This document shows positions 11,501-62,145 of a stretch of DNA of 64,000 nt, one piece after another. Numbering within the stretch: position 1 is the first letter of the stretch; every line of letters starts with the position of its first letter. The DNA is from Monocercomonoides exilis PA203. Its lineage: Eukaryota > Protista > Preaxostyla. The stretch covers positions 1,612,001 through 1,676,000 of the forward strand of contig LSRY02000006.1 in the NCBI GenBank assembly GCA_001643675.2, written 5' to 3'. The notes beneath the pieces were generated by a model, which was not told the DNA's origin, did no database searches, and saw nothing but the letters and a program-made list of their open reading frames with translations. A program made the translations under genes and the position numbers.

Positions 11501-12577
11501 GTTTTATCCATTGGAAAAGAATTTGATGAAGAAGCAGAAGATTGAGACGACGATGCAAATGATGAATTTTGATTTTCTGGTCTTAAATCATCGTCACAAA
11601 CTTGCTGAAACAAATCATCATCTTCGTCATAAATTTCTGGTGTAGCCTTTTCTTTTACAAAATTAGTCTTTAGAAGGCCCATTTTTATTGCTTCGGTTAA
11701 TTTGATTGGAGCCAAAGCTCCGGTCCATAATTGCGCTTGACTATTTTCATCAATGCATACAATACTTGGAGCTTCAACATGCTTAACTTCTTGTTCTGTT
11801 GTGTCGCAATCACGGCCTTCGTCGTGAGTCAATACAAATTTAAAATGCAATGGAAACTCATCCTCACCAAAATTGCGCATGCACTGAAAGAGCGGAAACT
11901 CCTTATCGTGAAGTCCTTGAGCCGAGTGACAAGACCAGAAAAAGTTTTTCCTTGTTCCTCCAATCAAACGAACAGTTTCTTTTGGCGAAATAAGAGGAAC
12001 TGGAACTTCAAAAATAACAGAGTTTTGACCAACAGGTGGATTATCTAAATGTGGAAGCGATGTCGGATGCTCCCGTCGTAAGCAGACATCATGAAGAGCA
12101 GTTGTCGATGAAACGTCTTCAAAGAAATTTGGAGCCAAATGCCAAACATCTCTAACTTCCACAAGTTCTTCAAGCAAGAAATGCAACAAAACAAAGAAAA
12201 TAGATCATTTGTAAATAAGAGATTATTAATAATATGATTTCTTTTCAAACCTCCTTCAGGAATAAAAAAACAACGTATTCGGTTCACTCCATTTTCCCAT
12301 TCAATTTGTCCATCTCTTTCAACAAAATACTTTATATGCAAATAAATATATATAAACAGTACATTTAAACAAAAATATAGCAATTTTATACCTTATATTC
12401 AAACTTTACACCAGCATCGACAAGAACAAATGCTGACCATATCTCTCCATTGCAAACGCAATGCACAGCAAAGTTAGGTTTCCATTTCCCGAGAGACGTA
12501 TTGGAACCACTTATGCATATATTTTCTCCCCATTTAGTTCGATATTTCACCGAAAAAAGAACAACAATTTTTCCCAT
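8545..12577 (-). CDS. DPE2: 4-alpha-glucanotransferase, DPE2-type (N-terminal CBM20 + GH77); exons 12577-12392, 12329-12251, 12167-8545
   Basis: The spliced N-terminus gives a CBM20 (TKWGENICISGS..LGKW..FEYK|YFV..WENGVNR..VRDVW). GH77 motifs: GVVIPVFSLRS, IQLLPVTDT, SYPYS, GDVPIGV, GAPPDAF..GQNWNFPTYNW, YRIDHILGFFRIWEIP, GEDLG, LRVQRMP, TSTHD, INQP..HYWKYR. The catalytic D/E/D residues are intact. Confidence 0.93.
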
Positions 12578-15764: not shown

Positions 15765-18700
15765 ATGTCAAGTTTTCCATGTTCTGGAGACTCTTCACCA
15801 AGATCATTTGAAATTACAAAACAGAAAAATGAACAGCTAGAAAAAGAAAACAAAATGCTGAAACTTTCTGTTCAGGAACAAAAACAGCAAATTGAGCGTC
15901 TGACAAGCCGAATTCATGAACTTGAATCGAAAGTTTCATTTCTCCACGAAGATTATCTTGTATGACTTATATTTTTGTTGTCCTTTGCAATTAATGTCAT
16001 TCCCTTTTAATAGATGAAAATACAAACGCTTAGAGACAAAACAGATCATTCAAAGGATATTTTTTCAAATAATAATTCAACATCCACAAACTTGCCATCC
16101 TTTGCTGTACAGCGTGGATTATTTGGATATTCAGACAGCATGCATTCTCGTCGCATGTCATTTGATGCTCGTGCGTCTCATGATATGTTTGTTCCATCGA
16201 CTTTGTCTGCACTGCCTTCTCCCGCAGCTGAAGAAGAATCGTCAATAATTCAACAGAAAGAAGCCACGCGTCTTGAATTGGTGGGAACAGTCGAGCCTAC
16301 AACGTCTACAGTTGATGGTTACGTGAAAAAACGCAATTTTGATTCCGAAAGGGCATGCGTTTTAGGTGTTTGTGTGATGGACAAAAAAGCCACTTCAAAG
16401 CCAATGCACGAAATACTGAAGCGAATACAAGAGCATGGAGACATAAAAATTGTCCACTTTGGGGAGCAAGTTATCAAAGAGCGTCCAGTGACAGAGTGGC
16501 CGCATTGCGACATCTTGCTATCATTCTTTTCTGGTGGGTTTCCAATTGAAAAAGCAATTGAATATGTGAAATTACGTAATCCGTTCCAAATAAACGATTT
16601 ATGCGGCCAGCTGGATCTCTTCTCAAGAGATAAGATTTATGAGCGTCTAACACAGCATAACATTCCAGTCCCTTCGTATGCTGTGATTTATCGGGATGAG
16701 TTTGGTAATCCGAATCCTTTATGCAATGTGGAAGAACACACAAACTACATTCTCATCGGAACCAAAAGAATCACCAAGCCATTTGTTGAGAAGCCGCTCG
16801 ATGCAGAAGACCACGATGTGTGGCTGTACTACCATTCTGATCAGGGCGGTGGAGCGCGAAGAATGTTCCGAAAGAAAGACAACAAGTCGAGTGAGTTTGA
16901 TCCGTCAATCACGCACATCCGCACTGATCGCTCGTATTTGTATGAGGAGTTCATCCCGGCGGATGGGTCGATGGACGTGAAGGTGTATGCTGTTCTGCCA
17001 GACTACGTGCACTGCGAGCTGCGGAAGTCGCCTACAGTCGATGGGATTGTGGAGCGCGATGCAAACAAGAAGGAGATACGCCGAGTGACACAGGCAACAG
17101 AAGCAGAAAGGCACTACGCGCAGATTATCGGGAAGGTCTTCAACCAGCGTGTGTGCGGGTTCGACATGCTGAGGAAGACGCGGAATGGGAAGACTCAGAC
17201 GTACGTGTGCGATGTGAATGGCTGGTCGTTTGTGAAAGGCGACCCGAACTATTACGAAGGCGTGTCTCGTATCCTGCGCAATCTGATGCTGCAGGCAAAA
17301 GCAAGGTTGAAGCAGCCAAAGCCGTTGCTTCACCCAGCAATTAGCGAGAACGACCGGAAAAGCGCGACTCTTAAACGTGTTTCTGCATACTTCAAAAGCG
17401 GAGAAAATGAGCCAAAGCAAAAAGTGAAAGTGCTCATCAGCTCTGAGAACTTTCCTCGATTAGTTGAGTTTTTTTCCACTTTAGCTTATCTTGTTTCTTT
17501 TGCTTCCAATGAATACATTTTCGGTGGAACATGTCCGTCGCTCCGAGGTGTTGTTGGGGCGTGCACCAGCTTTGAGGGATGGCAAGACGATGACGACGTT
17601 GCAGATTCTTTTGAGATTCTTGAGCATCGTCGGTCACACATTCATTTTGCTTCTATAATACAGGAGCTTCGTGCTGGAGAGAAGACAGTTGCCGACGCTT
17701 CTCAGTGCAACTCCCAAGCATCTTTGTTGTCAACATCCGTTGAAGCTCAACCGATGCTGCCGAATGCATCTGTACAGCCTTCTTCGTCATCTACAGCAGA
17801 AGAAGACGCACAGTGCCAATCTGATGAGTTGCACACAGATCGAAGTATTTCTCCGTATATTTTCGGAGGACAGCACATTTCACAGCCGATTCCAACCCTG
17901 GCGCCACTTTCTGAAGGCGCATCTGATGACAGCAACGCCCAGCGCCCTTCTTCCACTTCTCCTTCTGTTACTGCATCACAAACTGCAGCAGATGAACCGA
18001 AATCATTGCCTTCTGTACAGCTTCCTGAACAGATGTCATCTCCTATGACCAATATGGCATTAGCATTAGATGCTTCTATTTCTTCTCTTTCAACAGAAAA
18101 TGGTCGGACAGCATCGTCTTCACCACATGCTTGGACGCTGCCAGTATCGCCAAGAAAAATGGAGGCGACCACTTCAAACTTTGCTGCACCTGATCCTTTG
18201 ATTCAAGAAGATGAGTTATTTGTTGCAGAAAATGACATATCAGATGCAAGTGTGTGTTCTGACCAGGCCTCGCTGATTGCCGTGTATTCGCCTCCGTTCT
18301 CTGCCCATCGACATCGCTCTTCCTTTTCGAGCACTTCGAGTGTATCGTCAGCTGAATTTGCACCGCCTTCAGCTGTTCCCATTCAAAAGCCTGCGTCAGG
18401 TGCGCTGTTGCCACCCACCACTTTCCGCTTTTTGCCGTCTTGCGTGCATGCCAATCTCCCGTTCCCTGCCCACGAGACTTCCTTCTCACCACCAGAACCG
18501 ATACCGTTTGCCGGCAATGAGTCTGCTCCTCTCAGATCTGCCTCTGCAATCAGCATGAACAGCAGCTTGTATCGCTCAACGGCTGGCAGCCCTTCCCAGC
18601 TCTTTTCAAATTATTTCCAGTCAGATACGCAATTGAAGGCCAAACTGCGGAGTGACAAGAAGCGGAAGAAAAGAGACCGCAACAATGGATTTTCCATCTC

Positions 18701-21700
18701 AATCAAAAGCAACCCTGAGATTTTCAGAAAATTCTATACTATTTTGAAGGAGGAGCTGGAGAAAGCGTTTCTTCTTGCTGCGCAGACAGGATCAGTTGGA
18801 GAATCAAAAGAACAAGCAAATTCGTATTCTCCGTCTCAGAGTTATGTAATGCCATCTCCGCTGATCACAGCCCCAACCTCTGTTTCTTTGGCAACGCCAT
18901 CAACCGTAATTTCTTCTGCATCATCTTCTTCTGCTGCTACTACTACTTCTACTTCTTCTTCAATCTCTGCAAATCCTTCTTCGACTTCATCTTCTGCTTT
19001 GCCATATCCAACAAACAATGCTTCATCAGCACAGCCGACTTTCATCCACCCAATAGCTTCGTCTCCTGTGCTGTCGCATCCGCCATTGGTTTCCTTTGAG
19101 CCTCAAAGCAAACAATTGCTAGCACTTCGCAGACAGCAGCAGCAAACAAGCCCAATGCCCTCTCATCCGTGCGACCGCCAATCGAAAAAGAGTACAGCTG
19201 CAACTTCTCAAGCGAACGGTGTGTCTTCCCCAGCACCTTCGTCCCCATCTTCCCATCCAACAGCGTTTGTCAGGCCCCAATCAGCTGGGCAGTCATCTCG
19301 CAACTCAGTTGCCTCTGATCGGATGTCTGTTGTGCACTCCGTCGACGAGGAAGGCGACGAGCGCAACGAAAACAACTACAACTTCCGCTTCCGCCTGCGT
19401 GTGATGGATGTGGCGACGGGGAGCGAGGATGTTCTGGAAGCATTGCAGGACATACTGGCTGTGATGGAAATGGGGAGAAGAGGGCTGAAGATAGAGGCAC
19501 GGACTGCGAGGCTGACGCCAAGTGGAGATCTGTGCGGATTGTATAAAGAGCCAACGTCTAAGAAAAAGAGCAAGACGAAGAAGATGCAGCAGCCAAAGAA
19601 GAAGGGTGTTGAGAAGAAAGGCGAAGATGAAGAGAAGACGGATAGCTACACGCATTTGACTGATATGGACGAGGAAGGAGAAACAGACCAGCTGGAAAGC
19701 GACATTGGCAGCGATGTCGACGTTTCAGACACTGCCTCTTTCTTGTCTTCTGCCTCGTCTGCAATCAATGCCCCTGACAATCTGTTTCCAAACGAGCCAG
19801 AAGAAGTCACATACATCGTGCTCACCTGTCGCTGGGGTGGTACTCTGAGCCATTCTGGCTGGCGCGCATCGCAAATGCTGGGGCAGATGTTCCGCTCGAT
19901 CTTCTTGCCGTCGTCGCAGCTGTCTCCGGTGCCTTCGCCTGAAGCAGTGGCCGAGTGCGATGCGAAAGACGGTACCGAGTTCGTCCGCTCTGCCACCTTC
20001 CACACGACCATCCAGCGACGCTCGCAGGCATCGGCAGTCGGCTTTGCGGATGCGTTCTACAGTGGAACCATGAACAAAGACGCAGACCCGAGCGATTTGG
20101 CTGACCCGGCGCAGCTCATCACGCAGCTACCGTGTGTTTCTGAGCTGCAGAAGAAAGATCACATTCTTGTCATCGACTCTCCGCTGCTCCGTGGTGACCA
20201 GCACGAAAACGCGAGGATCCGGCTGTGGGACATGAAGAGCAAGCTGAAGAATGTGCTGATTGTGAACAGGGAATACGGCTACGAGCCAGAAGACTACGAC
20301 AACCCGATCATCGCAGCGCTGCTGTCGTGCGGGCTGAAGAAGCTGGGCAATCCTCACGCGCGTCTGGTGGCTATTCATTCTTCGATGCACTCGTTTATCC
20401 GCCGCCTGGAGAGCATTGAGAAGGGCAACAAAGGAAAGTCCTGTTTGGACTTGACAGCAGAACTGGAAAAGGAAAGAGCCAAAACGAAAGAGAAAAGAGA
20501 GAATTCTGTTCCGAGTCAGCTGTCTTTGTTCCAACAGACAACAAGCTCCACCGCAAATGCTTCGACAAATACAAACACGGATTCTGTTTCAGATGAGTTC
20601 GGAAAGATGACTATTATTTCTGCTTCGTCTGCTGCTTCAGCAGCATCGCCTTTTTCGAGTGAAGCATCTCCAGCCACATTTTTTTCTCTGATTGGTCCAT
20701 CATCCACAACAACAACTACTACTACTACTTCTTCTCCTTCTCCTTCTTCTTCTCCTTCATCATCGTCTTCTTCTTCTTCAACAACTACCAACATTATTAC
20801 ATCCTCTTCTGCTTCCACTTCTGCTGTTGTTAATGCTCCCTTCTCTGTGTTGGTGCCAACAGATCCATCATATCATCAAGATACTTCTCTGTCATCCTCA
20901 TCTTCCTTCTCTTTCTTGCCTCCGATTGCTTCATCTACTTCATCATCATCTCTATCATCAACTACTCCTGAGCCTCCTTCATCTGCATTCCTCCCTCTTC
21001 ACCACACCCGCTCTGCCCCAACATCTCCTGAGGTTCGGTCGATGGGAGACCCAAATTCACCTCCACATGCAGACACTTCGCTTATCCTCAGCACAAAAGT
21101 GCATTCGCACCAGCAAGACACTTCGGCTGATTCCGCTTTTGCACAAACAGACAATTCAAACGCTTATCCGTTTGCTCCTTCGTCTGAACTGAATGTTTCT
21201 GTGCCGCCAAATAAAAACGCACCCACTCTTGAATTCCTATCGCCTATCACTTCTTTGTCCAATTATCCTGCTTTGTCTACTTCATCTGTTCAAATGCTTC
21301 CAACATTTTCAAATTTATCAAGTTCAACTTCGTCATCATCCTCCTCCTCCTCCTCCTCATCATCATCATCATCATCAACTCCAGTTTCTTCCTTATCAAC
21401 TGCACCAATTATACGCACGCTAACTACAAAGAACTCATCTCCTTCCAATTCTCAGACGACTTCCTCGCTTTACAAGCAGTCTTCAACAGATGTTCTGGAT
21501 GGCTCATTTGTCGGATGCGGAGGAGAATCGCTCTCGTTAATCAAGCAGCGGTGGAAGAAGTTGTATCACTCGCTGCGGCACGAGAATGGCGAGTGGAACA
21601 CGTCAATCATCATCAACATCTATCAGAACTTGAAGTGGGACATCACCCATAATGCTCCCCTGGCTGAGCTTCTGAGCCCGCTGTATCAGACAATCGCTCC

Positions 21701-24620
21701 GCTGGCTTTCTTTATCCAGCCGTTGGAGTATGGAATCCTGCTGCGACATCGCATTCAGATATCAAGCGACTTTGCTGGGGAACTGATGAAGCGCGAGATG
21801 AAAGAGCTTGTTGGAACCGACCAGTCATCTGCACCAAAAGCAGAGTTCTTCTTCACTGACGATGCAACCATCAACTCGCTTGTGGATCAGATCATCCTGT
21901 CGGGGCTGCCTGGATTCCATCTCGAGTCTGCCAGCACACTGGGCGAAATGAACTACTCTTCCTTTGTGCTCTTCAAGACATACGCATCTGCCACAGGCAA
22001 AGTGTGGACGGATGTTGAGGTGTCTGCAGGAATCAGCGAAAATCCGTTCCAGATGGTCGGTCCAGCACACACACTGCCTCTGAGCCAGCCAGTTGCATTG
22101 CGCGAGGCTATCTGCAAGGAGGATGCAAAGGAGTGCTTCTTCGGAAGCAGCATTCCGATGGCAATTGTTCCGCGACACGAGACACTCAAAGGAATTGTTG
22201 CTGTGTTCCGCCACGGTGATCGAAAGCCCAAGCAGAAAATGAAGCTGAATGTAACGAACACGAAAGTTTTGGACTTGTTTTTCCCGCTGGAGGAGATTAA
22301 CCTTATCATAAATGCACAATCTCTTCCAGATTCTCTGAAGAAGTGCGTGATAACTGCTTCTCGTTCCTTTGATAAAAAAACATGGGCACAAACATTTGGC
22401 AATCCTGAGGACGCGATGTCTTCAACAGCCTCTGTTGGAGCTGCCGGCAAAGAAGCTGCGCCTCGCTGGCCTGACTCCATCCTTCTGAAACAGGAATACT
22501 CAAACGAGCAGTTTGAGTCGCTGATTAGTCTGCTTGTTGAAGTCATTCACGACAGCAGCAGGAAGCAAGAGGACGAAAAGCACAAGCCAGTTCTGTCGAT
22601 GCGGCAGAGGCAGAACGATGAGTATGAAGGATACATCAACCTGCACGCTGTCCTCTCAAAAAGCTATGTCGGCATGAAGATCCAAGTGAAGCCCACGAAA
22701 GTTCAGCTGCGAACTGTTCGGATTCCGCAGCCCACTCAGAAAGCAAACACTTCCTCTTTCAAGCCAATCGCAGACACGTCGCGAAGGCAGCGCTCCACTT
22801 TCCCCAGGCTCAAAGCAAAAGTGGACGAATTCCTTCGCTTCCTGCGGACGGCTGCGGCTTCTCCTCCAACTGCCTCTGGCATCGGTGACAGTAGCAATGC
22901 AAATCTCTCTGCTTCTCAATCATCCCTCTCTTCAGCATACCCCCACTCATCGTCTGCCCCTGCTCCGATTGTTCCTGAATATCGAGAAAAGCAGATCGTT
23001 GTTGTAACTGAAGCATTGCTTATTGTGAAATGGGGTGGCAGCCTGACACATGCAGGATATCATCAATCGAAGCAACTGGGAAGCCTGTTTCGTGAAACGG
23101 TGCTTCCGCTGGACAGGGGAGAGTGCAGAACATTCCTGGACAATGTGCATGTGTTCACGAATGGCGAGAGAAGAGTGGAGAGAACAGCAAGAGCATTCAC
23201 CGAAGCGCTGTTTGGTTTGGATGATCATGAGCTGGTGCAAATAACTCTTGCCTCTCAACTGCTCGATACGGTGCCAGACGAAGCAAGAGACTTTCTTGTT
23301 CAAACCAAAAAGAGGATGCAAAAGATTATGCTTATGAACTATGATTTTTCTATCTCGGGGCAGCCTTTGATAACTCCGGAATCGGAAAAGAATGTATATC
23401 TCAATTCTTCGTCTTCCTCAGCATCTTCTTCTTCTTCCACAAACTCTTCTGCAAATTCAAATTCCACAACTAATCTATCTTCAGCAGTTAATGACACATT
23501 TTCTGCTCTTCAGCCTTCGCATTCAGATTCGCTTTCGTCTCTCACACAATCGCGGGCAGCATCGTCTCCTATATCCACATCTCCGTCTGCTTCATCTCCG
23601 ACTTCTTCGTTCACATTTCGATCAACACTTTCTAATTCTTCTTTGAACATGTCTTCATCTCCATCATATGTGCCACATCGCTTCCACGCAAACATCGAGA
23701 AAATCAAAAATTCACTGCGTGTTTCGGAAGAAGAGCGCAACGACTTCAAAGGAACAACAAACGAGGCTGAGTTTGGGAAGCTTGCGAAAGAGTTTGTGGA
23801 TGACATCATGCGGTGCAAGCCATGGGGCCTGGCGCAGATTGGAAACCCGCTTGCGCGTCTGGTGCGTCTTGACAGAGGGATACAGTCGTTGAGGGATGAT
23901 CTGGCACAGAAAGTGGATCAGCTTGATCCCACACAGTATTATGCCCCAATGTGCGAGCATGAGTCATTTCGCACCATGCAGCATCGATGGGAGAAGGCTA
24001 CTGTTGATCTCCATGACCCAACGACCAACATATGGGATGTGACTAAGATTGGAGATATTTACGATTCGATCCGGTTTGATGTGATTCACATGAAGGACAT
24101 CTTGTCGCGCCTTTCTGTTCCAATGAACGACCTGCTTTCGAATGCAAAGGCATTGGCAGACTTCTGGGTGACACAAGAATTTGGCATTTCACATCAAGAT
24201 AAATTCAAAATAGGAAAGCTCATTGCTGGCCCACTGATGAGCCATATTGTGTCGAATATTGAAAATGCAGCGTTTAATTCCGCGCCATCAGTTGATCTGT
24301 ACTTCACCTCTGAATCTCATCTTCATGGGCTTTTGAACTTGATCATGCTTTCTGGGATTGACGGACTGATGTTGGATCGGGAAAGCATAATGGGGTTGGA
24401 CTATCTGACACACATTATTTTCAAAGTGTATGAAGCTGAACAGTCAAAAACATTTAGAGTCGAATTGTACATCTCAAGTGGAGCAATTCCATGCAATCCA
24501 AAAATGGATCTTGGTCAGACTCATGCTCTCCCTATTGAATCTCCATTCCTTGTTCACGAAGGCTTAACTCTTGTTCAGCTCAGACAAATTTTAGAATCAT
24601 TTGGTCCTGTTAGTAAATGA
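15765..24620 (+). CDS. VIP1: Inositol hexakisphosphate/diphosphoinositol-pentakisphosphate kinase (PPIP5K/Vip1) with tandem histidine-phosphatase domains; exons 15765-15959, 16014-24620
   Basis: Phase-0 intron 15960-16013 (GT..AG). ATP-grasp kinase motifs: LGVCVMDKKATSKPM, WPHCDILLSFFSGGFP, KPFVEKP..EDH, GGGAR.MFRK, YLYEEF, DVKVY, RKSPTVDG, VCGFDMLR, VCDVNGWSFVK. Phosphatase motifs: RHGDRKPKQKMK, LLIVKWGGSLT, LYFTSESH, LDYLTHIIF. Confidence 0.95.
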
Positions 24621-31237: not shown

Positions 31238-32042
31238 CAAAAGTTTTATATCTTTGGAGAGGAATTATTCATTTAAAAAAAAAAAACCTGATAATTGTTG
31301 AAAATTTCGATAATTGAGATGATATTCATCAAAAAATTATCTTTGAAAAAAGAAAGGACTTTTCAGTATTTAATTGTTATTTCAGCAAGTCTGTCAATTC
31401 TTCAAATTTTTATTCTTCAAGTCCATCAGGAACACAGGCTTCATTTAAGTGAAAAGACAAACTATTTTAACAAGATTCAAAAAAGTTGTCAAAATTAACG
31501 AAATAATAATTCTGCCTAATTTCAAAATGACATCAATTCAAAAACGTTAAACAACAATTTGATGTTGAATATTTAAACTCATAATATTGTTTTTTTAAAG
31601 AAAAAAAGAATTTGAATTGTTGCTATTTTATATAATTGTCAAGGCAATTACTTTTTGGCTCACAAAAATAATAATATTAATTATAACAGGTGATTTTCAC
31701 GAAAAATATGATATCAGTATCATCTAAATTGGATATAATTACAAAAAACCGTGCTAAATTGAAAGAGATTATAACAGATTAAAGGTGCATTCAACAAATA
31801 GAATTTAACAAAGTGTTTTAAAAACCAAAAAATTCATAAAAACGAAAAAAATAAAAAAATTTTTTTCATTAACAAAATCTTTAACTTTTTGAAAGAGATA
31901 AGCAAAGGTATAAATAATGTGTGATTTATAATTGGCAAAAGTAATTTTTGGTGGATAAACGATAAGTCATATTTGAAGGTTCCACTCAATTTGATGAAAT
32001 AAAAAGAATCTCTCTTTTAAAATTAGATAAAATACTTGTGAT

Positions 32043-35000
32043 TTATCTTTTTTCCAAAGAAGCATTATCATCCGTTGTAGAGTCAAGATCAGATAAGTCG
32101 CTATCTGATGATTGATGATTTTCACTTGTTAATTCATCAAAATCAATCATCTGTGTGGGAGTTTCTAAATGATGATCCTCTCTGAATTCCAGCATCTCCA
32201 CCCCATCACTCATCATCACAGAAGGACGTGCCTCATCTTTACGCTTCGTCAGTTCTTCATTCTGCTCTTCAGCATCTTCAAGAACCCTTTTTGCAAAGAC
32301 CTGGTCAACAACAGTAAAATGTTCATCAAATATACTACTTAGTACACGTTTGCAACCCATTAGCACAGCTTCTGATCCACTATTCATTGTATCGTACAAA
32401 AACGTTAAGCGCTGAATAATTTTTGTGTGATCTTGCTGATGAGCTCTAAATTCTGCAATGCTCAAAAAGTCAGTTTGCTCCATCTCTCTTTCTTCGCTTC
32501 TAAGGACAAGAACACAGAGTTGAATGAGCGTTATCATTCCTTGTGCAATGACGCTACTATCACCACCTTCCTTAATATCCTCAACCACAAGCTCTCCGCA
32601 CATCATCATCTTCTCGTGATTTTCGTCCCAATGTGATATGTATGTTCGCATTGATTGCAGAAGAACCATTTCTCGCTCTCCTTCTTCAATCGGCAACAGA
32701 CAGCGCAATTTGTCTGTTTGATGCTCATGATTTAGCGCTGAAGATCGAATGGGCAGCATAACGATAAAAAACGACAGAATCACTACAACACAGCAAATAA
32801 TACTTATGATCATTATCATCTTTTCACTGGAATTGGCATTACTCACGTATTTGTCATAAAGAGCCTTGGTGTAAGTTTGAAGCCCTTCAACAATGTCATA
32901 TTCAAGAGCAGCATTGATATATTGATAGAGAGGAGATGTTGCATCAATAGGAAGAGGATATTCTTCCATATTCTCGAATGAAATATAAAGGATATTTAAC
33001 CGAAGCCGCGAGATAAGCGATTGAATTCCGTAAACATTTGATCCAACTCCAGGGATGCGATCTGTTATAGGCATATCGCAAAGTGTTTTATTATTGAACA
33101 CACACTGACTAGAATCAAACAAAATATCTGTCTTGTATGGATTAGATGTTTGCAATTCAATATAGTGATTGAGAAGCTCATCTCCTGTTCCTATATGAGC
33201 CACTTTTGAATAGTGTATTCCAGTATAGATAGCTTCAAAATAATCACTCAGACCTACCATAATATTCTTTAGTAAAGTTCTGTTGCTCGACAGATGAGAA
33301 TCATTTTTCCAGACTGGATTAGTTGATTCAGAAAATGTGATTGGTACTGGAGATGTGAATGACGCTGCAGCTGGATGCACCAACCGGAATGCGAAATATC
33401 GTATCATAATCAGCACTGGAACTTCAATACCCGATAAAAATATTGCATCAGGTTCTCTCCAATTAGCAAAGCCGCTAATGATTGCAGCAAGAAACAGCGA
33501 TAGCCAAAATATTATAAATATCAAAAGTGAAACTGTAATTCTGACCTTCATTGATTTGTCGAGCGGGGTGGGAAACTTACTGTACGATTCGGACAGTACC
33601 TTAATGTTATCTTCCAGTTTTCGTTCCCATTCGACATCTGGAACAACACCTCGAATAAAGCCTTTTCTGGATATTCCTCTGTTTTCATCGTACTCATCCT
33701 CCCCCTTTCCACCAGGCATCACACTCCGCACATCATCCTCAACACTGTTTTGAAATGGAAGAGTTGCTTCTCCATGAAAGTTTGTATCAGCAATGTTTAT
33801 GCCACTTGATGAAGACAAAAAAGGAGAAGTGATTGCTGGACAAGCAATTGCTACATCAGCTCCCGATTGGTCAGAGACGCTCATTTGTTTGTTTCTTTTT
33901 GATTGAGGCTTTAAAGCGTTCTGTAGCTTCTTCTCCGTAGATGTTGATGGATTGATAGATATTGACAAAGATGTTGGAGATAATGTCAGAGAAGGAGAAA
34001 GCGATTCAGATTCAGACTGAGATGAAGAGGATGAATGTGATGAGGTGGATGATACATAAGCGTTGTATATCTGGGCTTGCTTCTGTGATGCTGATGTGGA
34101 TGCAAATCCATGGTCAGCTGATGATTGAGTTGATTGAGATTCAAAAGATTTATCTGTGACTTCTGGCTTGACAGGGAATATGGAAGGTAACTGTAACACA
34201 GCCTCAGGAGTTTTGGATGATTTAGGTTTTCCTGTTGTTGAAGAAAATATTCCTGTTCCTTCTTCATTTTCTTTCTTTTTGTAAACATTTTTCTTTCTTC
34301 TCTTTTGCCTTTTTTGTGGACGGTCAGCTTTTTCACTTATGTTTTCTGATGTTGCTGATGATGTTCCTGGTGAAGTTTGATGAGAAAGATGGAGATTAAC
34401 AGTTTCATTGCTTTGTGCTATAGAAATACCAGATGGTTGAATGGATCCATCTTTACTCTGACTGTTATTAGCATAAAAAGGAAACTTTGAAGGATCGTTG
34501 TGAAATGTCTGAGGAAGAAAAGAATTTGATATGTCAGGAAGAGGAAGTGATGGGAAATGAGGTGAAGGCTGTGAATTGAAAGGGGCGGTGCTGTTCAGCA
34601 AAGCAGGTGGACGAAGTGAGTACATTCCGTTTGAACTGTCATCAGGTACATTACTTTTTCTAACATCCATTCCTGTGCCAAAAATTGGAGGCTGCCAAAG
34701 CGCTGAAGAACCCATTAGATGTGGATCTGGCAAAGAAGGATTTTGAAGGGAGGATGAAGTGACAGGCAAATCTGTTGGACCCAAAGAAGGTGAAATGAAG
34801 TGGGATGGCTGAAATGAAGGAGTGGTGAAAAGATCTGTTGACATTGCCATTCCAGACTGCTGCAACTGGAGCTGCTGCAGCTGGCTTTCCTGGATCTGTT
34901 GCTGAAGTTGCAGTTGGAGCTGCTGGATTTGCTGCTGTTGGAGGATTATTGTGAGTGTAGTATTCATCTTTGGAGATGAAGACAGAGTTGGACTTGTTGG

Positions 35001-38000
35001 AGGAGCTGTCTTTCCAGTTAAAGAGGTTTCTGTTTTTATTGCCTTTGATTCAGAAGAGGATGAAGGAGAATGCGTTGTATGACGTGTATCCTGCGTCTTT
35101 TTCAATGGAATTTCAGAGCTGCTGACGCTGTCATTGCGGATATGACTGGACTCAGCGCTTTTGCCATCATTTGCAGTGCTGCTCTTTGGTGATGATGGGG
35201 TTGAATTATGACTCGACAGCTTTTCTGAGGCTTGAGGCAAAAATGATCCTGTGGAGCTTTGAGAAGCACTGGGGTGCAGAGCCAAATCTGGTTTGCTGCT
35301 TCTTGAATGAGATGAGCTGCGAGAGTCGTTGTGGGAGAGTTCTTCATGAGTGTCCAAGCTGTTTGTCTCCCCTTTGAATTGCGATTCCGATGTTGTTTTG
35401 CTTTCATCGCTCAAATCAGGAACATCATTTCTGAAAGCACCTTGTGCATCATCCTCTTCCACTTTAGCATCAAATTCAGGTTCTTTTGTTAACATTTCAG
35501 GTGATTGATTGTTCACGTTTCGAAGTTCTGTCAGTTCTGGTTTCTGAAGAATATTTAGTGTGCTATCATGTTGTTCTTCTGGCTGAAGTGGCTGCTTATC
35601 GTTTGATGCTGCTTCAAAGAATTCCCGCTGCATTCGTTCTTCTTCGACCTCTTCTTCATCCGCTGAAATAGTTGTATTATTCATTGATTTGTCATTAGCT
35701 CTATCTAAATCATCTCCAAGTTTTATATCTCTCTTATAATTTTGATTGACATAACCATTTAATTGAGCTAATTTTTCTTCATGTAACGTGTTGCCCATAT
35801 TTTTTTGAACATTTGGATTTTCTTTGTAAATTGGTGTTCCATCAGATTTACCTGCAGAAGCATTTTTGCTTTGCTTTTCTTGTGACTCCTTTTTGCGTTC
35901 AACAAGCAAAGGATCAGAATTCCAGCGCAGTGGGCAGTGAACAAAGCCAGATGTTATTACCTGAGGATCAGATACATTTTGATTATCAGCAATATAACGT
36001 TCACACGTATGATCGCCAGTTGCAGATAGATCAGTGTCAATGGTAGACGTAAATAGAAGTCGATTTTCTGTTGACAATTCTTCTGCTTTTGGAAGGCCGC
36101 TACCTCCACCGAACGCAAAATCGTTTTCACCTGAACCTTCTCTTTTGTTTGAGATGTCTGATATTGTACTCTCAAATGTATGAATGTAGTTATCAAAGCC
36201 ATCTTCTGCCTCCGCTTCAATCTCGTTATTGTCAATTGTTTCATTTTGTTTTGATTCCAAATTGTCTTTTTGGTCATTATTGCTTGAATAAGCATTCATT
36301 TTTACTTGGTTAATATCAACAAACCTGGAATGAAAACCTTCTTCCTCAAACTCATCAATATCGTCAATGTCATCTATTGAACTTGGGAGAGTCAGAGTGG
36401 AGCAAGTGAGTTGTGTGCTAGCTTCAGATATATTCGGGTTTGTCCTATTTGGAAACAATAACATTGTTGGTGGTGCAAGATTTTGTTTGATGTTGCCTGA
36501 CGAAAGCGATTCGTAATTTTGTGATTGTAACATCTTTGGATTGAGCAAGTAGCTTTCATAGCCGTATATGTCAGTTGAAGCTGACGTGGAAGCTGAAAGT
36601 GAGGAAAGGATAGTGGATGTTGCTGTTGTGGGACGAGAAATGCTCAGGTTGAAAAGCGAATGAGCGTCGAGAGAAACTCCATCTGCACTTTCTGTTGAGG
36701 AATGCAAGAGGAGATGATGAGAAGAGTGCGGAAATGGAGCAGAACCTTGTTGAATGGCAGACATCGAACATGAGCCAGAGGGAGAAAAAATGGAAGGAAT
36801 CGAAGAGATTGTCCCGGATGCAGAAATTGAGGATTTTTGAGAGGAAGGCGAAAAAAGTGAAGCTTGCAAAACAGAATTCTGATTTTGAATTAGATTATTC
36901 AAAGGAAGTGAATGAGAGGATGCTGTTGTTGAAGAGGCAATTGTTAAGTCAGGAGACAAAGGCAAGAGAAATTCAAAAGTGTGATCTTGCGCAATTTGAT
37001 GGGAAGGCGCATTCTGAAAAGTTGGGCTGTGAGCTCGTTCCGATGCTCCCTGCACATTGCGGCTCACTTCTGTTTGATGAATTTTGCCCTCAAGCTTTTC
37101 ACTTGTCTTTTGAGGTGATAGCGTACTCAAAGAAGATGCATCACTTTCATCATGATCTTCATCTTTAACGATGCATTCACCAGATTTGTCTGCTTCTTCA
37201 TTTTTCACGTTACTCTCGCAAAGGTTATCACCGTTCTCCTGTTCCTCATCTATCGTACCTTCGTTTTCAGCTAAAAATAATTGCTGTTGATTGGATTGAT
37301 TGCCTGATGATTCATTTGCTTGTCCATTTGCCGCAGCAGATTCTGCATCTCTTCCGCCAAAGTGCTGGTGAAGATGACTTCTGCTATGCACCTGCTGATT
37401 CTGGCTGTCTCTGCTATTGAATGAGCCAATATTCCACTGAGCCTTTCTTATCATTGCTTCAGTTGTTATTGATGTTGGAGTGGAAGACATAGAACTCGAA
37501 GATGCACTTGATGATCCAGTAGTTGTGTCAACAGGAGTGAATGGTGATGACTTGAAGAGATTCGACTCCGAAGAGAATACAGCTGGCGTTTCAGGAGATG
37601 AAAGCTCAGTGTGACTTTGTCCATCTCCTTCAAATGATTCTGAAAGAGTACGATGCGACAAAAATGTTGCTGGCATTTCAAGCTTATCAAGGCCCATGTT
37701 GTCTGATGTGAAGCGAGATCCAGTTGACATGTGCGAGAGAGTCATTCCATCTTGCTCACTGCTAACATTTTCAGTAAATGCAGCATTTGGTGAAAGTGCA
37801 GCAGCAGAACTAAGAGGGAGTCGGGGATTATCCTGATACGAAAAATTGTCTTGTGACATTACTCGATGTCGATGTGGTTCTGAAAGTGGACTAGAAAGAG
37901 CACGAGATTGTTTTTCAACAACTTGCAGCGGTTCTACTATTTTTATCTCAGACTGCGACTCTGCATTTGCGAGATGTATTTGAGCTCTAAGCTGTTTATC

Positions 38001-41000
38001 TTCTTCTTTTTCTCTGATTTTTTCTGATTTATTCGAATGCCTTGATGAAATGCTTTTTGAAGACATGCGTTGTTTTTTGGACTGTAAGGATTCTTGCGAA
38101 TAATTCATATGCCTTGCATCACTCATTTCATTTTCTTCTTTTGTTTGTTCTTTGCCTTTTGTTTCCTCATTTGAATATTCTCCTTTAATAGTTCTTTCGT
38201 CATTTTTTTTGTAACTATTTTTCCTTCCCAAGTTTCTGTTTTTTCGGACAAGAAAAGAATCGGAAGTTTGCCTTTTCTGTGTCTTTTTCGACTGCTTTTC
38301 ATCACTTCCTGAACTTGTACAGAGCTTCATAATCTTCTCAGATTTTGAGTGCGACACTTTGTCTGCAAGTGCAAAAATGTCGATGTGTTTGCCAAGTGAT
38401 GCATTTCTGAATGACTTTCGTGAATTCGAATGATGCAGCAATGGAGTCCGATCGGCAAATATTTCACTGCTGTCCACGCTGTCTGAATTTGAGTTATTGG
38501 ATGACAAAGTTTCAATTGTGGGAAAATGCGAACGTGCTGTGTCTTGAGCCAAAGATCTCATCGAAAGAGTATTGTTCAGCGAGGGGAATATTGACTGGGA
38601 AAGAGATCGAACCATTTCGCTTTTGCTGGCTGAGCCAGATCCATGCGATTGGAGCAAAGTTGGCACGAATGGATGCCCAGTATGATCGGCAGGGGCATGC
38701 TTCGTCTGTTCTTGCTGGGCCATAAGCTGGTTTGTAGTCAAAAATGCAAGCGGAATTGTCGAACGGCTTCCCTGGCGAACAAGTGGCTGGCTTTCAACAA
38801 GAGCCATTGGAGTTGTGTTCTGCTGGTTGGTCAACATTTGCAGTGTGTCCTCTGAGCGTGTCTTTGAATGTGTGTCATCGTCGTTATCTTTGTCTCTTTG
38901 GAGAAGACGCCTCAGCACATTTTGGATTTTAATTTTCGGAATGTCCAGAAGTTGCACCATTGATTCATGACGTCGTTTTGTGAGGGTAGACACCATGTAA
39001 ATGTAGAGCATGCTTAGACTTCCAAATGCCAACAGAGTAAGAAATGAGATGCACACAAGATAAACCACATATGCGCTGAAGTATGAATTATTCGCCAAAT
39101 CAACATAATCTTTCATGATCAGTTTTTCCCCGTCAAAAATCGGAAGAAAACTGTTAAACATCAACAAAAGAAGATGCTCTTTGTAATATGGCACATCAGT
39201 CTCCAAATTAACCGAGCTTCCAACCTGTGACATTGATTGCGAAGCTAAAGTGATTGCAGAAAGCATTGTCACTTGCTCCGGAATCATCTGGCTTATTGTT
39301 GTTGTGCTGTTGTCCATGTCAATTATGTGGAGAGACACGGATGCACTCTCCCAGCTCGAGGAGTCCATTGTTGATAAGTAGACATCCGCGAAATGTGTTA
39401 TGAATTCTTCAGAACACTTCTTTATGTGCGAAAGAATATCAGCAAGCGGCTCAATTGCCAGTGCAGCTGATCCGTTGAGAAGGGCGTTGTTGTAATCAGC
39501 AGAGTGAGCCAGAACCTGAATGGAGTCAACAGCAAACATCGCTGTGATAGCAGACAGTTGGCACATTCCATACAAGTTTTTAACACAAAGAAGGTCTTTA
39601 TTTCTATTCTCAATGAACAAAAACAAAAGTCCAATAACTCCTCCGCAATACAAAATCATCCCAGTAACAATTGCGATAAAGAATTTCTTGTCGTTCATTC
39701 TGAGTTGTGAATGCTTTGGACCCATCGAATCAGCTAGTTGCATAATCAAAGCCTGTTGCGCAGCTGCTTTGTTTTGCAGCAACTTGTTCTTTTTCTTCTT
39801 CTTCTTCTTTCTCTTTTTCGATTTGTCGTGACTATGCCCCTTTAACTTCACCCCCAATAGTTTTTTCGAACTATGCTTCTGCACATCTTCAGCGATTCTG
39901 GTTGAGTGATATTGCTTTATCGTTTGGGTGTGCTTTTTCTCGTTTGCACCAGCAAAAAGAAGAGGCACTTTATCCATTTCCACATTGTCGTCTTGAATGT
40001 CACTGTTACTTTCAGTGTCTGTTTCAGAATGGCTTTCTTCCAAAGAAATAACCTCATTTTTCGTCACACTGGAATTCTCATTTCTTCCGTTTTTGAATCC
40101 CTCTTTGACTTCATTACTGGAGAACTCAGGAGAAGAACCCATTGCTTTCCCGTTAGCATTTACAATTCGATTTTGAGTGTTCTCTTTTTGATGATTACAA
40201 GGATTATTCTCGTTATTGGCATGACAATACTCCTGAAATGCGCTGTGCGGAGAATTCAATATCCTCATATCGTCTTTGTTCACCAGATTCCCATCGGGAG
40301 CGCTACGTAAATTATCCTCATTCAAAGAAGCAGCCGCACTGACACCATTTAGCAGACGAGCCCTTTCGCAAAATAGCGAATCTGTAATCGCGTTCGAGCG
40401 TCGGGAGCGCGAAATATCGTCATCCGAACTGATTGGAGTGCTGCTTGGGCTCCTTGACTTGCTGCTCTCAAACGGAGCCTGCGGGTTGAATGAAGCTTCT
40501 TTCTGGTCCTGCGATGTGGGTGACACAGCTTCTCCTGGCTGTGAAAGTGTGACTGTGAGCGTCGGGGTGAAAAAACCGACTTCGCGTGACTCTTCTTCTT
40601 CGATCTGATCGGCGTGCAGAAAGATCAGCGCGGCTGTCTCGTCCTCGCGGTAGATGTCCATCAGAAGCTGGCCATACATCCGAAGCAGCTGCACATTCAG
40701 AGGATGCGCCCGCAGCAGCTCCTCAAAGCAGCGCCGGGACTCAGCTTCGCTGGCGACCACCTGCCGAAGCTGCGACGGGTACAAATTGAAGTTTGGGTGC
40801 TGCTGGATGATGTTTTCCCAGAACTCGCTGAGTGTCTGCTTCGCTTCGGCGTGGTGCTCCATTGCTCGGTAGAGCATCGACTTGAAGGTGAGCGTGGCGA
40901 CTTCCGAGTCCTGCTCGTTGTTGTCCCCTCGCTCGCTTGTGCTGGAGCTCCTGTCAGACTCCGCGTTCTTGCAGAAGAGCACAAAGCGAAGAGATATCGA

Positions 41001-42631
41001 TGCGTTGCTATATTGGATCTGCCGGAACACAACACTCGCTTTGGCATAGTTCTTTTTGAAGTACGACAGAAAACAGCCATATTGGAAGAGCAGCTGTGTG
41101 TTGTTTCGGTGGCGCTTAATAGCCAGCTGATAGACGTAATCGACGTATTCCATGTACTTTTCGTTTCGGAATCTGCGCTCCTGAAGAAAGCGGAGTGAAG
41201 GCTCGATTTCATTTGTGTATTTCAGTTTAAGGAAGTGATCTTGCTCGGGTGAAGTGACACCCTCTGAAATGACATGAGTTTCAGGGCTGTTAGGTGGATG
41301 TGAAAAAGAGAACGGTGATTGTGATGTGAAAGCTGGAGCAGCAGAAGAAGTAGACGGTGAAGGAGACGAAGGAGCTCCAAGCTGAAGCTGAGGATGGTTG
41401 TTTGAGTGCAGATTTGCAACATCACATTTGTTGTCTGGAATTTCGTGATTAGAACCAGGCAAAGGTATTTTTGACTTAACATCAATTAGAGGTTGCTCGT
41501 CTTTTGTCAGAAGCCACAATTTTTTCCTTCTTCTACCCATCCAGATACAAAATATAATGCTCAACCCAAATCCGCAAGCAAAGCCTATTATTGTTGACAA
41601 TAAATAAATTCTGTTAATAATTGTCTTGTCGCAACCATTAAAATATGTGTCTTCAAGTTCATAGCCAATTTCTCGGCTGATGTACATTAGCATAAACACA
41701 TTGTACCTCATTATGAATAAGCAATTGCCTGTCGTCCAGTAGAATGGTTGAATTTGAATGATGTATATTGTCAGAGATACGCAAAACCCTACAATAACAA
41801 CACCGCGTAAAAATGCCCATTCGCCACAAAGTTTTAATAGAAGAATCAGTGAGATAATAAATAGTCCATCTAAAGCATTAATCGTTCCTGTGGAAGAAGA
41901 TAATAATTTACCACCTTTTGGATTGTAATTATAAATAAACAATCTGTAGAAAATGCTCCAAACAGTTGAAATGATTAATAAAATAAATGTGCAAATAGCT
42001 GCACCTATCTGGTAACTGTTTGAGCCAAAGCATTCAAGTGACCCAACTCTTGTGATATACTTATTGTCAACTTTATAACAATTTATCGATTCCAAAGATA
42101 TAGTGTAAATTGGAATGAATAAAAATTGATCAAAAATTGTTGCGATAACTCTCTCTATGGTGATAATTCTTGGATGAGTAGTAATAATATTTTTGAAGAA
42201 AATTCCAGAAAGTACAAATATAATGACAACAACGATGTAGATGAGCAGAAGTACAAAAATTAGCACAGTAAAATTAGATTCCAGCAACATGGCATATTTT
42301 GTTCCTTCAATATAGCCTGCCATTGATATGTGCAAGTAATATATCTCAATTGATCCATTTGTTCGTATAAATGATAAAGAGCACAATTGAACCGTTTGGA
42401 TGAGCCATAAAATAAAAAAGGGTATGCTGCTGATAGGTTTTTTCTGTGTAATACATGCAAAAAATAAAATAATTAATAAAAACAAAAAATGATTAAGATA
42501 ATAGAAACCTGATTGTAAAATGGATAATAACTTTTAAAAATCAATGATTCTAATGGATTGAATTTTTGCTCTGGTAGCAAAGCAACGGCAGAAGAGCTTC
42601 CAAACGAAGAAAAGCTCTTTTCATCTTCCAT
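32043..42631 (-). CDS. Giant TmcB/TmcC-like multi-pass membrane protein with a C-terminal hemerythrin-like domain; exons 42631-42509, 42443-32043
   Basis: Phase-0 intron 42508-42444. N-terminal multi-TM block; TPR-like helical region (LSEFWENI..FEELLRAHPLNVQLLRMYGQLLMDIY); two TM-flanked extracellular segments, followed by LLDIP and CLLP respectively. C-terminal WDENH..SEEREM..HQQDH..EHFTVVD fits the hemerythrin signature. Confidence 0.8.
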
Positions 42632-52637: not shown

Positions 52638-55600
52638 ATGAATGAAACTACAGAATCACAACAAATGCTACTTGATATGCCACTTGGTGACTTTCTTCAA
52701 TTTGACAAATTGCAAGAGGTGCAACAGTATTTTTATCAACATGGAAATTCTCAACGCGAGTTGACAGAAGAACAAGTATGCAATTTTGAACGAATACGTT
52801 TTTATTATGAGTATTTAATTCAATTTTTGTTTTGAAATTATTCTTTTCCGATTTAAAAAAAGTTTATTGAATGCTTTCGGACAGTTTTACCTGATTTAGA
52901 AATAAATGAGAGGGCTTTGAAAATGATTTTTCGAAAAATCGATGCAAACAGTATTGGTAGAAGTGTGCTTATTTTTTTAAAAAATTTTTACATGCAATTT
53001 TGATTCTTAAATCAATTATAGTTCCTTGGGCAGAATTTTCAATGTTTTTTTTACAGCAATCAATGGTTGCTTCTGTTAGTGATTCAAATATTGTCTGCCT
53101 TCATTATGTTTATTTTGAATACGAATTTAGTGTTTTTTTTTTTTTTTTTTTTTTTTTTTGAAAAGGATCCTTTATACGCTCCAGTTGAAGTGTCTGTTTC
53201 CGTTCATGACGATAGCGCTTTGCGTGCATACCATCATCTTCAAATCACAACTTTCATTCACATTCCACGTTACGGAATGTTTTTTACGGGGAGGTTTCTG
53301 ACTTTTCAGTGATAAATTATTTTTGTTTAATGATTTTTTAATTTTTTTAACTTCACGCAATAGTAATGATGGGCAAATCAAGAGTTGGGAAGAAACATTA
53401 AGTTCCTTGCCACTTGGCACAACAGATCACACGAATGCCGTTCTGTCATTTATGGGAGTTGAGAGGACAGACGTGATGAACAAAGTTCGCACCCAGGAAG
53501 CAGAAATATTTGACCTGCAAAACAAATCAGGAATGTCCACTCAACAGTTCAATTCTCCTCGCTCTCCGCAGGAAATGACTCGACTCATTTCCATCAGAAA
53601 CACAAAATCTCCACTTTCATCAAAGTCAGTTATGCTGAAATCAACAAATCCTGCAAAATCTGCAACTCCGTCAACATCAGGAGCATTAAGCTCGCCTGCA
53701 TCATCTCCTCTTTCATCGCCTCACCGTAGCGAATTTCCAGCATCTTCTTCTCCTTCGAGCTCTCCCGTGTCCTTTAAGGATTCCTCTTTTTCTCCATCTG
53801 CATCTTCAGAAGCTTCACAAACACCCACCCCTTCATCTCCCTCATATCAGTCTTCCCTCTCTCATTTCCCCTCCTCCAACGGATCTTCCCTTTCGACCTC
53901 TGAAACCATAGCGCGGGCAGCAAACGACGTGACCTTCGCCCTCTCAATGAAAGCGAGGAGCCTTGCATACAAGCACTACAGCAACGCCCGCACTCGGAGC
54001 TCGTCGGCCGACGCCACACGAATGTTTTTCCCGATGGGAAACACAGCTGTGCAGTCGTCTCTGAAGGCCTTTGTGAACGGAGAGGACCTTCCTGATCCAG
54101 ACGAAGGGTGGGGCGGCGCATTCACCGAGCGCAACAAAGTGAAGATAAAGTCAGCGGTGTCTCCGATGGCACGGGCACTCAAACAAGGAGGCAAATCTCC
54201 GAATGATACGCAGCTCCGATCAAAGACGCCAACGAAGACAAAAAGGGGGACTGTTCCTTCTCCGCTCTCCTCGCTTTCATCGACATTTCGGAGCACTTCA
54301 TCATCGACAACATCGTTTGACAGAGAACGAAGTGCGACAATTGCAGTTGATAGCTTTGACGAAGGAGAGAGAAGTCTTCGCGAAGGCACGTTGAACACTT
54401 TGATGGGAGATGAAGCCTTTGACCTGATGGAAAGCGGAGAGGAAGAGCGGTCTGAGCGGAAGAGCAGAGGCGAAGAAGGAGGAGATAGCGGGGCACTTAG
54501 GCAGGAGGAAATAGACAATCCAGAGATTCTTGCAGAACTTGCGCGGCAGAATGAGCTTCTGGACGGTGGAAGGAGTGGGCGCCTGGCAACAGGGAGCGAC
54601 ATGTTTCTGCTAAGGCGGAAGCAGAAGAATAGGAAGTGGGGGCAGACACAGCCGCACAGCGTGCAAGTTGTCGAGAAGAAGAAGCCCATCCCGATTGTGT
54701 GTATGTGCTATCTCCCATACTCCCAGCTCATTGCTGTGTGCAGCGCAGACAGACGTGTCACTTTTTATCCACCGGGTGTTGGCGAAATGCGACCGAAAGG
54801 GCAGATCAAATCGGTGACAGCACTGCCAACATCCTGCTGCGGCATCCATCCTGACTGCACGAAATCTAAAAGGGAGCTTCTTGTGCTGGGAAAAGACGAC
54901 GGGTCGCTTGATGTGATTGTCATTACACCAGAACTGGTGAACTCGGCATTCGACATCCGGATAGAACGAGGCAAACAGGAGCTTGACAAGTTTCTGGGTG
55001 TCAAGACAGAAATGCGCCTTGATCTCCAGACACCAAAGCACGAAGCAGCAGACACATCTCCTCTGCTGTTAGACCTCGCCTCCACCACACGCGCATCCAC
55101 GTCTGCTTCAAGCACACGCCGCCTGTCTTCTTCTGCTTCAACATATCGCTCTGGATTCGGAGGAGGTGCTGGAACTGGAGCAAGCAACACACCCACACGG
55201 CTCAGTCGTGCTTCTTCGATTGCCTCCTCTCCTCAGACACACCGCCACACCTTTTCAGATCCATTTCACTCTTCTGCTTCAGCCAGCCGCTCTCCGCTTT
55301 CCACTCTTTCTCGCACAGAATCTGATGCTCAGGTATTTGGCGACGGTTCGACTTCATCTTCACCAAAGATGGGTCCATCTACTACGTCTTTTCCATCCTC
55401 TCCAAAATCACCATTGATTTCAGCAACTTCCTCTTCTCTCTTGTCTGTCACACCTGTGCTGGGAAGATCCAACAGACGGTTCAGCACACATGATGCGCAA
55501 TCTCCATTGAGTATGTATGCAGCTGCAGAAGGATCATCGCAATCACCTTCGCCTTTTTGTGCCACGCCTCGTAATTCTTCTCCCATTGCAACGCCTTTCA

Positions 55601-61600: not shown

Positions 61601-62145
61601 CTCCGGCTTCTAATGATAATGATGAAGACACTTCAACCAGCAAATCGCAGAAGTCTCCCCAGACCCTCTCGAAAGCATCTAAAAGTTATGCAGACAACGC
61701 CAGCCTACCAAATGTGCTGAACTCTGATGAGGCAGGCACCGAAGCCAGAGATAGAGGCGATATTCGAGACAAAGACGAAGAGACGCTGAAAAGACCAGAA
61801 ACTGCTCATTCAGTAAACAGCCAGCAGCATCAGCAAAGTAGTTATTCACAAACAAGCAGACCGAAAGATGTGGAAGAAAAACGTACGAATTCCGATGCAG
61901 CTAAAGGAGGAATTGAAAGTTTGGGCCTCCGCGAAGATTTATCTCTCTCTGAGCAGATTGCTGCTCTTCAAAACAAAAAACTCGAAGCAGCAAGTGCGAC
62001 TAACGTCAGTGCTCAAGGCACGCTTCTTGGAAAAGTGACTCATACTTACACAAAGAAAGCATTGCTTAACAGAACACGGCAAACTCAAAAAGCATCCACA
62101 CTCCCTGATCCTCCGTCTTGGAAGCCTACAACAAGTCCATATTAA
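52638..62145 (+). CDS. EF-hand + WD40-repeat protein (WDR49/EFCAB8/WDR64-like) with extensive Ser-rich insertions; three short 5' exons, a fourth short exon, then a long exon from about 53364
   Basis: Spliced EF-hand loop IFRKIDANSIGR|IPWAEF and WD motif FFTG|SNDGQIKSW. Many WD repeats: VTASLDSTMKLFD, ISGSMDHTVAIWN, GHAAPV, SLGMDGCIRIWD, VTGSLDGFIKVWN, ASADDGSLAAWN, GIDGKLRFWS. Confidence 0.85.

Follow-up and report, generated by a model that had tools for sequence, protein, structure and literature searches.

A predicted bacteriohemerythrin-type tail on a TmcB-family membrane protein of Monocercomonoides exilis

Hemerythrins and TmcB proteins in signalling

In hemerythrins, H73, H77 and H101 are the ligands of one iron (Fe1) and H25 and H54 those of the other (Fe2), E58 and D106 bridge the two, and O2 binds at Fe2. 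Bacteriohemerythrin domains are defined by these seven ligands (PMC8846402). The described protein that best matches our domain in sequence (PDB 4XPW/4XPX; NF033749, TIGR02481) is a soluble, single-domain O2 carrier, which shares about 22% identity and the register of the motifs with the domain reported here, but differs from it in having a complete di-iron site. DcrH-Hr (PDB 2AVK/2AWC) is the hemerythrin of a Desulfovibrio vulgaris chemoreceptor, so that here too an anaerobe has the domain attached to a membrane signalling protein. In DcrH-Hr, H118 (equivalent to H101) is an Fe1 ligand, azide attaches to Fe2, and I119 (equivalent to I102) adjoins the site for exogenous ligands (PMC3947700). 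The two domains have the same fold (rmsd 1.6 Å over 124 aa, TM-score 0.83), but DcrH has seven ligands and an MCP domain, whereas our protein carries Val in place of H54 and Phe at the I119 equivalent, and is a eukaryotic TmcB protein with no known output domain. In VcBhr-DGC and Bhr-HD-GYP, too, hemerythrin switches signalling in response to redox state or O2 (PMC8846402), and there complete di-iron sites control an adjacent enzyme; the protein described here has no enzyme domain. Work on a hemerythrin-like protein of another subclass has shown that single His-to-Ala variants lose both di-iron absorbance and O2 binding (PMC12753109).

For the membrane portion, the nearest described proteins are TmcB and TmcC of Dictyostelium, which have a multi-TM N-terminus and TPR_TmcB repeats (PF25474) in common with our protein, a likeness drawn through the family rather than by direct comparison of the sequences. 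Unlike our protein, they are not reported to contain a hemerythrin. Dictyostelium tmcB has been linked with the formation of macrocysts and with cAMP signalling, and hypoxia induces it slowly (PMC12750705). We take the hypoxia induction as a hint only.

M. exilis is a mitochondrion-less gut oxymonad. Its genome paper places hemerythrin among the oxygen-stress genes, and the main text describes neither a membrane fusion nor a family of 60 genes and says nothing of absent ligands (PMC6759080). The Preaxostyla genomics paper, which reports that these organisms are without haem synthesis, makes no mention of a TmcB-hemerythrin fusion (PMC10703272). Literature searches returned no paper for TmcB and hemerythrin together, and nothing relevant for degenerate mononuclear hemerythrins. 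Automatic database annotation gives some members the label "putative hemerythrin" and others "TmcB/TmcC TPR repeats domain-containing protein".

Gene model, transcript and architecture

We analysed a 64-kb window, the whole stretch of M. exilis DNA to which all coordinates below refer, and searched the genome (82.3 Mb in 101 contigs) for related genes. The TmcB-hemerythrin feature under study lies at the 3' end of an open frame of 3480 codons (32043-42485, minus strand, as are all features of the gene given below), and every peptide quoted in an earlier, sequence-only reading of this DNA lies within that frame. A further open frame of 41 codons, running from an ATG up to a GT and in phase 0 with the long frame, is the probable first coding exon (42509-42631), joined across a probable 65-nt GT-AG intron (42444-42508) according to the sequence and a frame check. 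With this 5' model, the spliced protein would probably have about 3507 aa. The public record P0001 (3222 aa) begins at Met259 of the long frame and therefore lacks the probable first exon (with its intron, 42444-42631 in the window, minus strand) together with most of the N-terminal TM bundle.

At the other end, an acidic low-complexity C-terminal tail runs to a TAA stop (32043-32279), followed by a probable 3' UTR (31891-32042) in which RNA contigs of four runs terminate, at positions 31891-31926. Reassigned stop codons were considered and rejected, an ordinary TAA stop being followed by UTR. The RNA comparison was confined to 31700-37400. Contigs from the four runs, which all belong to one study, match 31891-37400 throughout, free of joints, gaps and differing letters; they tell of the presence of a transcript but neither of its level nor of its strand. 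A single contig spans 31911-37400; the contigs reach into the Ser-rich region described below as far as 37400, end 120-150 nt beyond the stop codon and do not enter intergenic DNA. Since no joints occur across the hemerythrin tail, the tail is not spliced out.

Elsewhere in the window, a 2868-aa PPIP5K/Vip1-like protein with two histidine-phosphatase stretches is encoded at 16014-24620 on the plus strand. Three other neighbouring genes seem unremarkable and without relation to the focal one. They encode a TM protein that weakly matches a kinase (62-3508), a GH77 4-alpha-glucanotransferase (8545-12189) and a 2940-aa WD40 protein (53323-62145).

The predicted protein begins with a multi-pass TM bundle of at least six helices (41544-42443), assigned, like all TM segments here, by a hydropathy scan rather than a dedicated topology predictor. 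TPR_TmcB repeats (PF25474) follow at aa 516-634 (40584-40940; E 3.5e-16; 59.7 bits, cut-off 27), so the assignment to the TmcB family proposed in the sequence-only reading is borne out. Next come a TM-loop-TM module (TM aa 939-957 and 1136-1154; 39024-39671) with three N-glycosylation sequons in its loop, a low-complexity, Ser-rich region of about 1750 aa (18% S; 33636-38888), and a second TM-loop-TM module (TM aa 2985-3003 and 3224-3242; 32760-33533). The above-cut-off TPR_TmcB match, the N-terminal bundle and the two later modules are the features of TmcB/TmcC proteins. The Ser-rich region, which is presumably cytosolic and disordered, accounts for the focal copy being twice the usual length of the family. 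In the loop ahead of the last TM helix a pair of Cys residues is conserved and four N-glycosylation sequons occur, which suggests that it probably faces the outer or lumenal side and that the tail is probably cytosolic. A helical linker of about 30 residues, kept across the family, then closes in an LLP motif (32667-32759) that we take to resemble the segment preceding class III cyclase domains. Directly after this linker comes the bacteriohemerythrin-type domain (32280-32666), as the sequence-only reading had it. A Pfam scan of the protein found no PAS, cyclase or any other enzyme domain, again in line with that reading.

The hemerythrin tail and its family

Four kinds of evidence (HMMs, PDB sequence matches, a family profile and fold comparison) identify the tail as a hemerythrin. 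It matched the bacteriohemerythrin models NF033749 (E 2e-10, 40.7 bits, under the curated cut-off of 84) and TIGR02481 (E 1e-9, 38.2 bits, under the curated cut-off of 51.75); Pfam Hemerythrin (PF01814), the model suggested at the outset for recognizing the domain, gave no match to the tail. All PDB sequence matches were bacteriohemerythrins, with the Methylococcus-type 4xpw at E 1.7e-5, and a profile built from 35 paralogue tails retrieved hemerythrins only, the best again being 4xpw (E 6.5e-18). The four-helix bundle that had been anticipated was predicted by AlphaFold with a pLDDT of 96, in a model that contains no metal. With Foldseek, the top seven rows were bacterial hemerythrins (TM-scores 0.71-0.83), with weak E-values of the kind usual for helical bundles. 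An unbiased fold search (VIA) ranked DcrH-Hr first (Z 17.2, rmsd 1.6 Å), ahead of 4xpw (15.9) and an invertebrate hemerythrin (14.5), while unrelated bundles scored Z 12.9 or less. When the last 250 aa are shuffled, the loose spacing of the six ligands arises in 0.6% of cases. By predicted fold and by descent as read from sequence, the focal tail is thus a true hemerythrin domain.

Six of the seven ligands are left in this domain: H25 (32616-18), which belongs to Fe2, and all five of the coordinatively saturated Fe1, namely E58 (32493-95), H73 (32439-41), H77 (32427-29), H101 (32319-21) and D106 (32304-06). The seventh is replaced. The segment VLRSEE aligns with HFKSEE of bacteriohemerythrin, which places Val (codon GTC, 32505-07) at position 54, and the domain contains no HxxxE; the sequence-only reading, which saw a full set of H, HxxxE, HxxxH and HxxxxD, was right about six ligands and wrong about the HxxxE. 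In the pocket, Trp97 is changed to Ile, Leu98 to Phe and Ile102 to Phe, whereas W97 is kept in 73/81 and I102 in 71/81 of the free hemerythrins found in the family search. The loss of H54 and the altered pocket residues thus all bear on the O2-binding iron. The alignment also places a Cys at position 51 (32514-16), one turn ahead of the missing His54; in canonical domains this position is often Thr.

The focal gene is one of many. In the M. exilis genome we found 64 frames with a hemerythrin tail and 69 TPR_TmcB matches, the two occurring together in one uninterrupted frame in 56 cases, and there are about 60 TmcB-hemerythrin genes; paralogue architectures were read from shared open frames and public proteins. 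One paralogue, L003, is identical in sequence to P0011, that is, MONOS_2207 (NCBI, EukProt). Two loci (G000:C47:219023-219397 and C25:860549-860821) have an in-frame TAG in the tail and are probable pseudogenes or contain introns. None of the four cyclase loci found in a six-frame search of the genome places a class III cyclase in a TPR_TmcB frame, and PAS_9 had no match in the same kind of search, in which introns could hide some.

A HMMER scan of 1.84 billion representatives with a profile of TM helix plus tail gave about 100 TM-hemerythrin proteins of the family type among its best 150 matches. All 28 of those that could be named among the matches listed are from Preaxostyla: M. exilis, Blattamonas nauphoetae, Streblomastix strix and the free-living Paratrimastix pyriformis. 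A feature search of the ESM Atlas returned eukaryotic clusters only. A one-off fusion was considered and rejected, given the 56 TPR_TmcB-hemerythrin frames in the genome and relatives in three more Preaxostyla genera. The focal gene is a real, expressed and undescribed TmcB-hemerythrin fusion, one of about 60. The novelty claimed for the architecture stands in so far as no paper describing the family was found, but the focal copy is no singleton.

The single TmcB homologue that our searches retrieved from outside Preaxostyla (P0156, a EukProt identifier), presumably a Cyanophora protein, ends just after the LLP linker with no tail domain. Because it ends there, a hemerythrin "appended to" a TmcB protein fits the sequences as well as one that "replaces" another module.

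We recorded the ligands of 87 TmcB-type hemerythrin domains in which all seven positions could be read. Nine are complete, 28 have lost just H54 and so share the pattern of the focal copy, and 42 have neither Fe2 His, while 81 keep all five Fe1 ligands. His was lost at 117/174 Fe2 positions against 7/261 Fe1 positions, counts that come from related sequences and hence overstate the number of independent events. H54 was lost in several separate clades, including Paratrimastix, whereas free hemerythrins from the same search have H25 in 76/81 and H54 in 75/81. A motif particular to the half-site clade, RQRL, follows H77; it is conserved and contributes no ligand.

Several members depart from these patterns. 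The Blattamonas protein P0003 (KAK2960695.1, 3353 aa) consists of two tandem TmcB-hemerythrin units, with His/Gln and Arg/Val at positions 25/54, and either is truly fused or reflects a gene model that merges two genes. P0074, P0075, P0057 and P0103 group as a clade of their own, in which residue 25 is Asn, residue 54 is mostly Gln and residue 59 varies; P0075 runs about 1500 aa beyond the hemerythrin, with no Pfam match in that extension. In L039 (G000:C30:943730-944098), H25 and H54 are kept and the Fe1 side is degraded (Arg73, Phe77, Asn106), and its close relative P0076 has a similar reverse pattern.

Readings of the metal site

The reading we favour, with about even confidence, is that the tail is a one-metal metal or redox switch, possibly with a labile second site, on a TmcB-type, receptor-like membrane protein, and not a classic O2 sensor. 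A degenerate bacteriohemerythrin would form the cytosolic end of the multi-pass protein, with E58, H73, H77, H101 and D106 holding one divalent metal, most likely Fe(II) and possibly Zn or Mn. The Fe2 site, which lacks H54 and is crowded by Phe102, would not allow classic reversible O2 binding, and a second site, with His25 and Cys51 nearby, would be weak at most. Metal occupancy or oxidation state may alter the packing of the bundle, which the short helical linker could couple to the last TM helix. As there is no enzymatic output domain, the signal would pass by partner binding on the TPR or disordered regions. We know of no characterised natural one-iron hemerythrin that could serve as a model. 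The ligand pattern is maintained at 25-40% identity over Monocercomonoides, Blattamonas, Streblomastix and Paratrimastix, which argues for selection on the Fe1 ligands; judged from sequence, this conservation would equally serve a purely structural metal.

We next considered an atypical di-metal site, a possible but rather unlikely arrangement in which a regained His25, with Cys51 or solvent standing in for His54, holds a labile second iron, so that the domain would sense redox state, peroxide, NO or iron level by gaining and losing Fe2. The ancestry of the focal copy lends this some weight. In a quick LG+G4 tree, rooted on family members, the focal copy groups apart from other His25 proteins and, with two M. 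exilis paralogues, nests in a clade characterized by Arg25, Phe98 and Phe102, several branches with 99% support separating this trio from the outside of the clade. A constraint uniting all Arg25 members without the trio was rejected (log-likelihood difference 55, AU p=0.0007); the constraint group was chosen after the first tree, and the ligand columns were kept in the alignment, a choice that opposes the nesting. His25 was thus probably changed to Arg once and regained in the trio, and its codon in the focal copy is CAC against mostly AGA in the relatives. All three His25 members have Cys51, which shares a helix face with E58 (i-7), and a separate large clade likewise keeps H25 without H54. 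On the other side, the two Arg25 sister genes of the trio share Cys51, which is therefore older than His25; this Cys is a full turn more distant from the site than H54; and the pocket has acquired Phe98 and Phe102 and lost Trp97. What is new here is that the focal copy sits, in this tree, inside the half-site (Arg25) clade beside a clade-specific Cys51. Its domain lacks one histidine of an O2 site and seems to be of half-site ancestry.

The preferred one-metal switch must also be weighed against a pseudo-hemerythrin, which we consider doubtful though worth keeping in mind. Here a single metal would be structural, and the bundle, as the output end of a receptor for an outside ligand, would serve for protein interaction or oligomerisation, with no sensing of gas or metal. 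Such a role would suit an expansion to about 60 genes in spite of loss of the reactive iron in most paralogues, the RQRL motif of the half-site clade, the two outer loops of the focal protein, which could bind ligands, and the absence of any tail domain from one TmcB homologue. However, a complete di-iron subclass persists in all or most of the four genera, tying the family to iron chemistry, and the three His and two carboxylates kept across genera suit an exchangeable metal at least as well.

Elements of these readings can be joined, although we offer the combination tentatively and think it improbable as a whole. Preaxostyla would have tuned a bacterial-type hemerythrin into several receptor classes (complete, His54-less and half-site), and the focal subclade would have rebuilt its second site. 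A further step, which we hold just as tentatively, is that His25 and Cys51 then made a switch of one fixed and one labile metal that sits at the membrane and reports on the Fe(II) or redox state of the cytosol.

An intact di-iron hemerythrin binding O2 or NO like DcrH-Hr, the function first proposed from sequence, is very unlikely for this copy. In both sequence and fold the domain is matched best by O2-sensing bacteriohemerythrins, M. exilis is microaerophilic and about 9/87 of the family domains are complete, but the focal domain has Val for H54, Ile for W97 and Phe for I102, and with one Fe2 ligand missing and the pocket changed the proposed site is not supported. Finally, a chance motif, a spliced-out tail or a decayed pseudogene, for which the PF01814 result and the sub-cut-off NCBIfam scores might speak, can be set aside as barely credible in view of the unbroken frame, the joint-free RNA contigs across the tail (four runs, one study), the confident fold, the family profile (E 6.5e-18), the fold search and the ligands kept across genera.

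The value of these findings lies mostly in the family, and less in the focal gene alone. The family offers a natural series of seven-, six- and five-ligand hemerythrins in a domain of 130 residues that should express easily, so that one-iron hemerythrin chemistry becomes directly testable, and the focal copy is useful in this series as one that appears to have regained a ligand. With only four cyclase loci, no PAS_9 match in the six-frame search and no haem synthesis, the approximately 60 hemerythrin-tailed membrane proteins are obvious candidates for how an oxymonad senses oxygen, redox state or iron.
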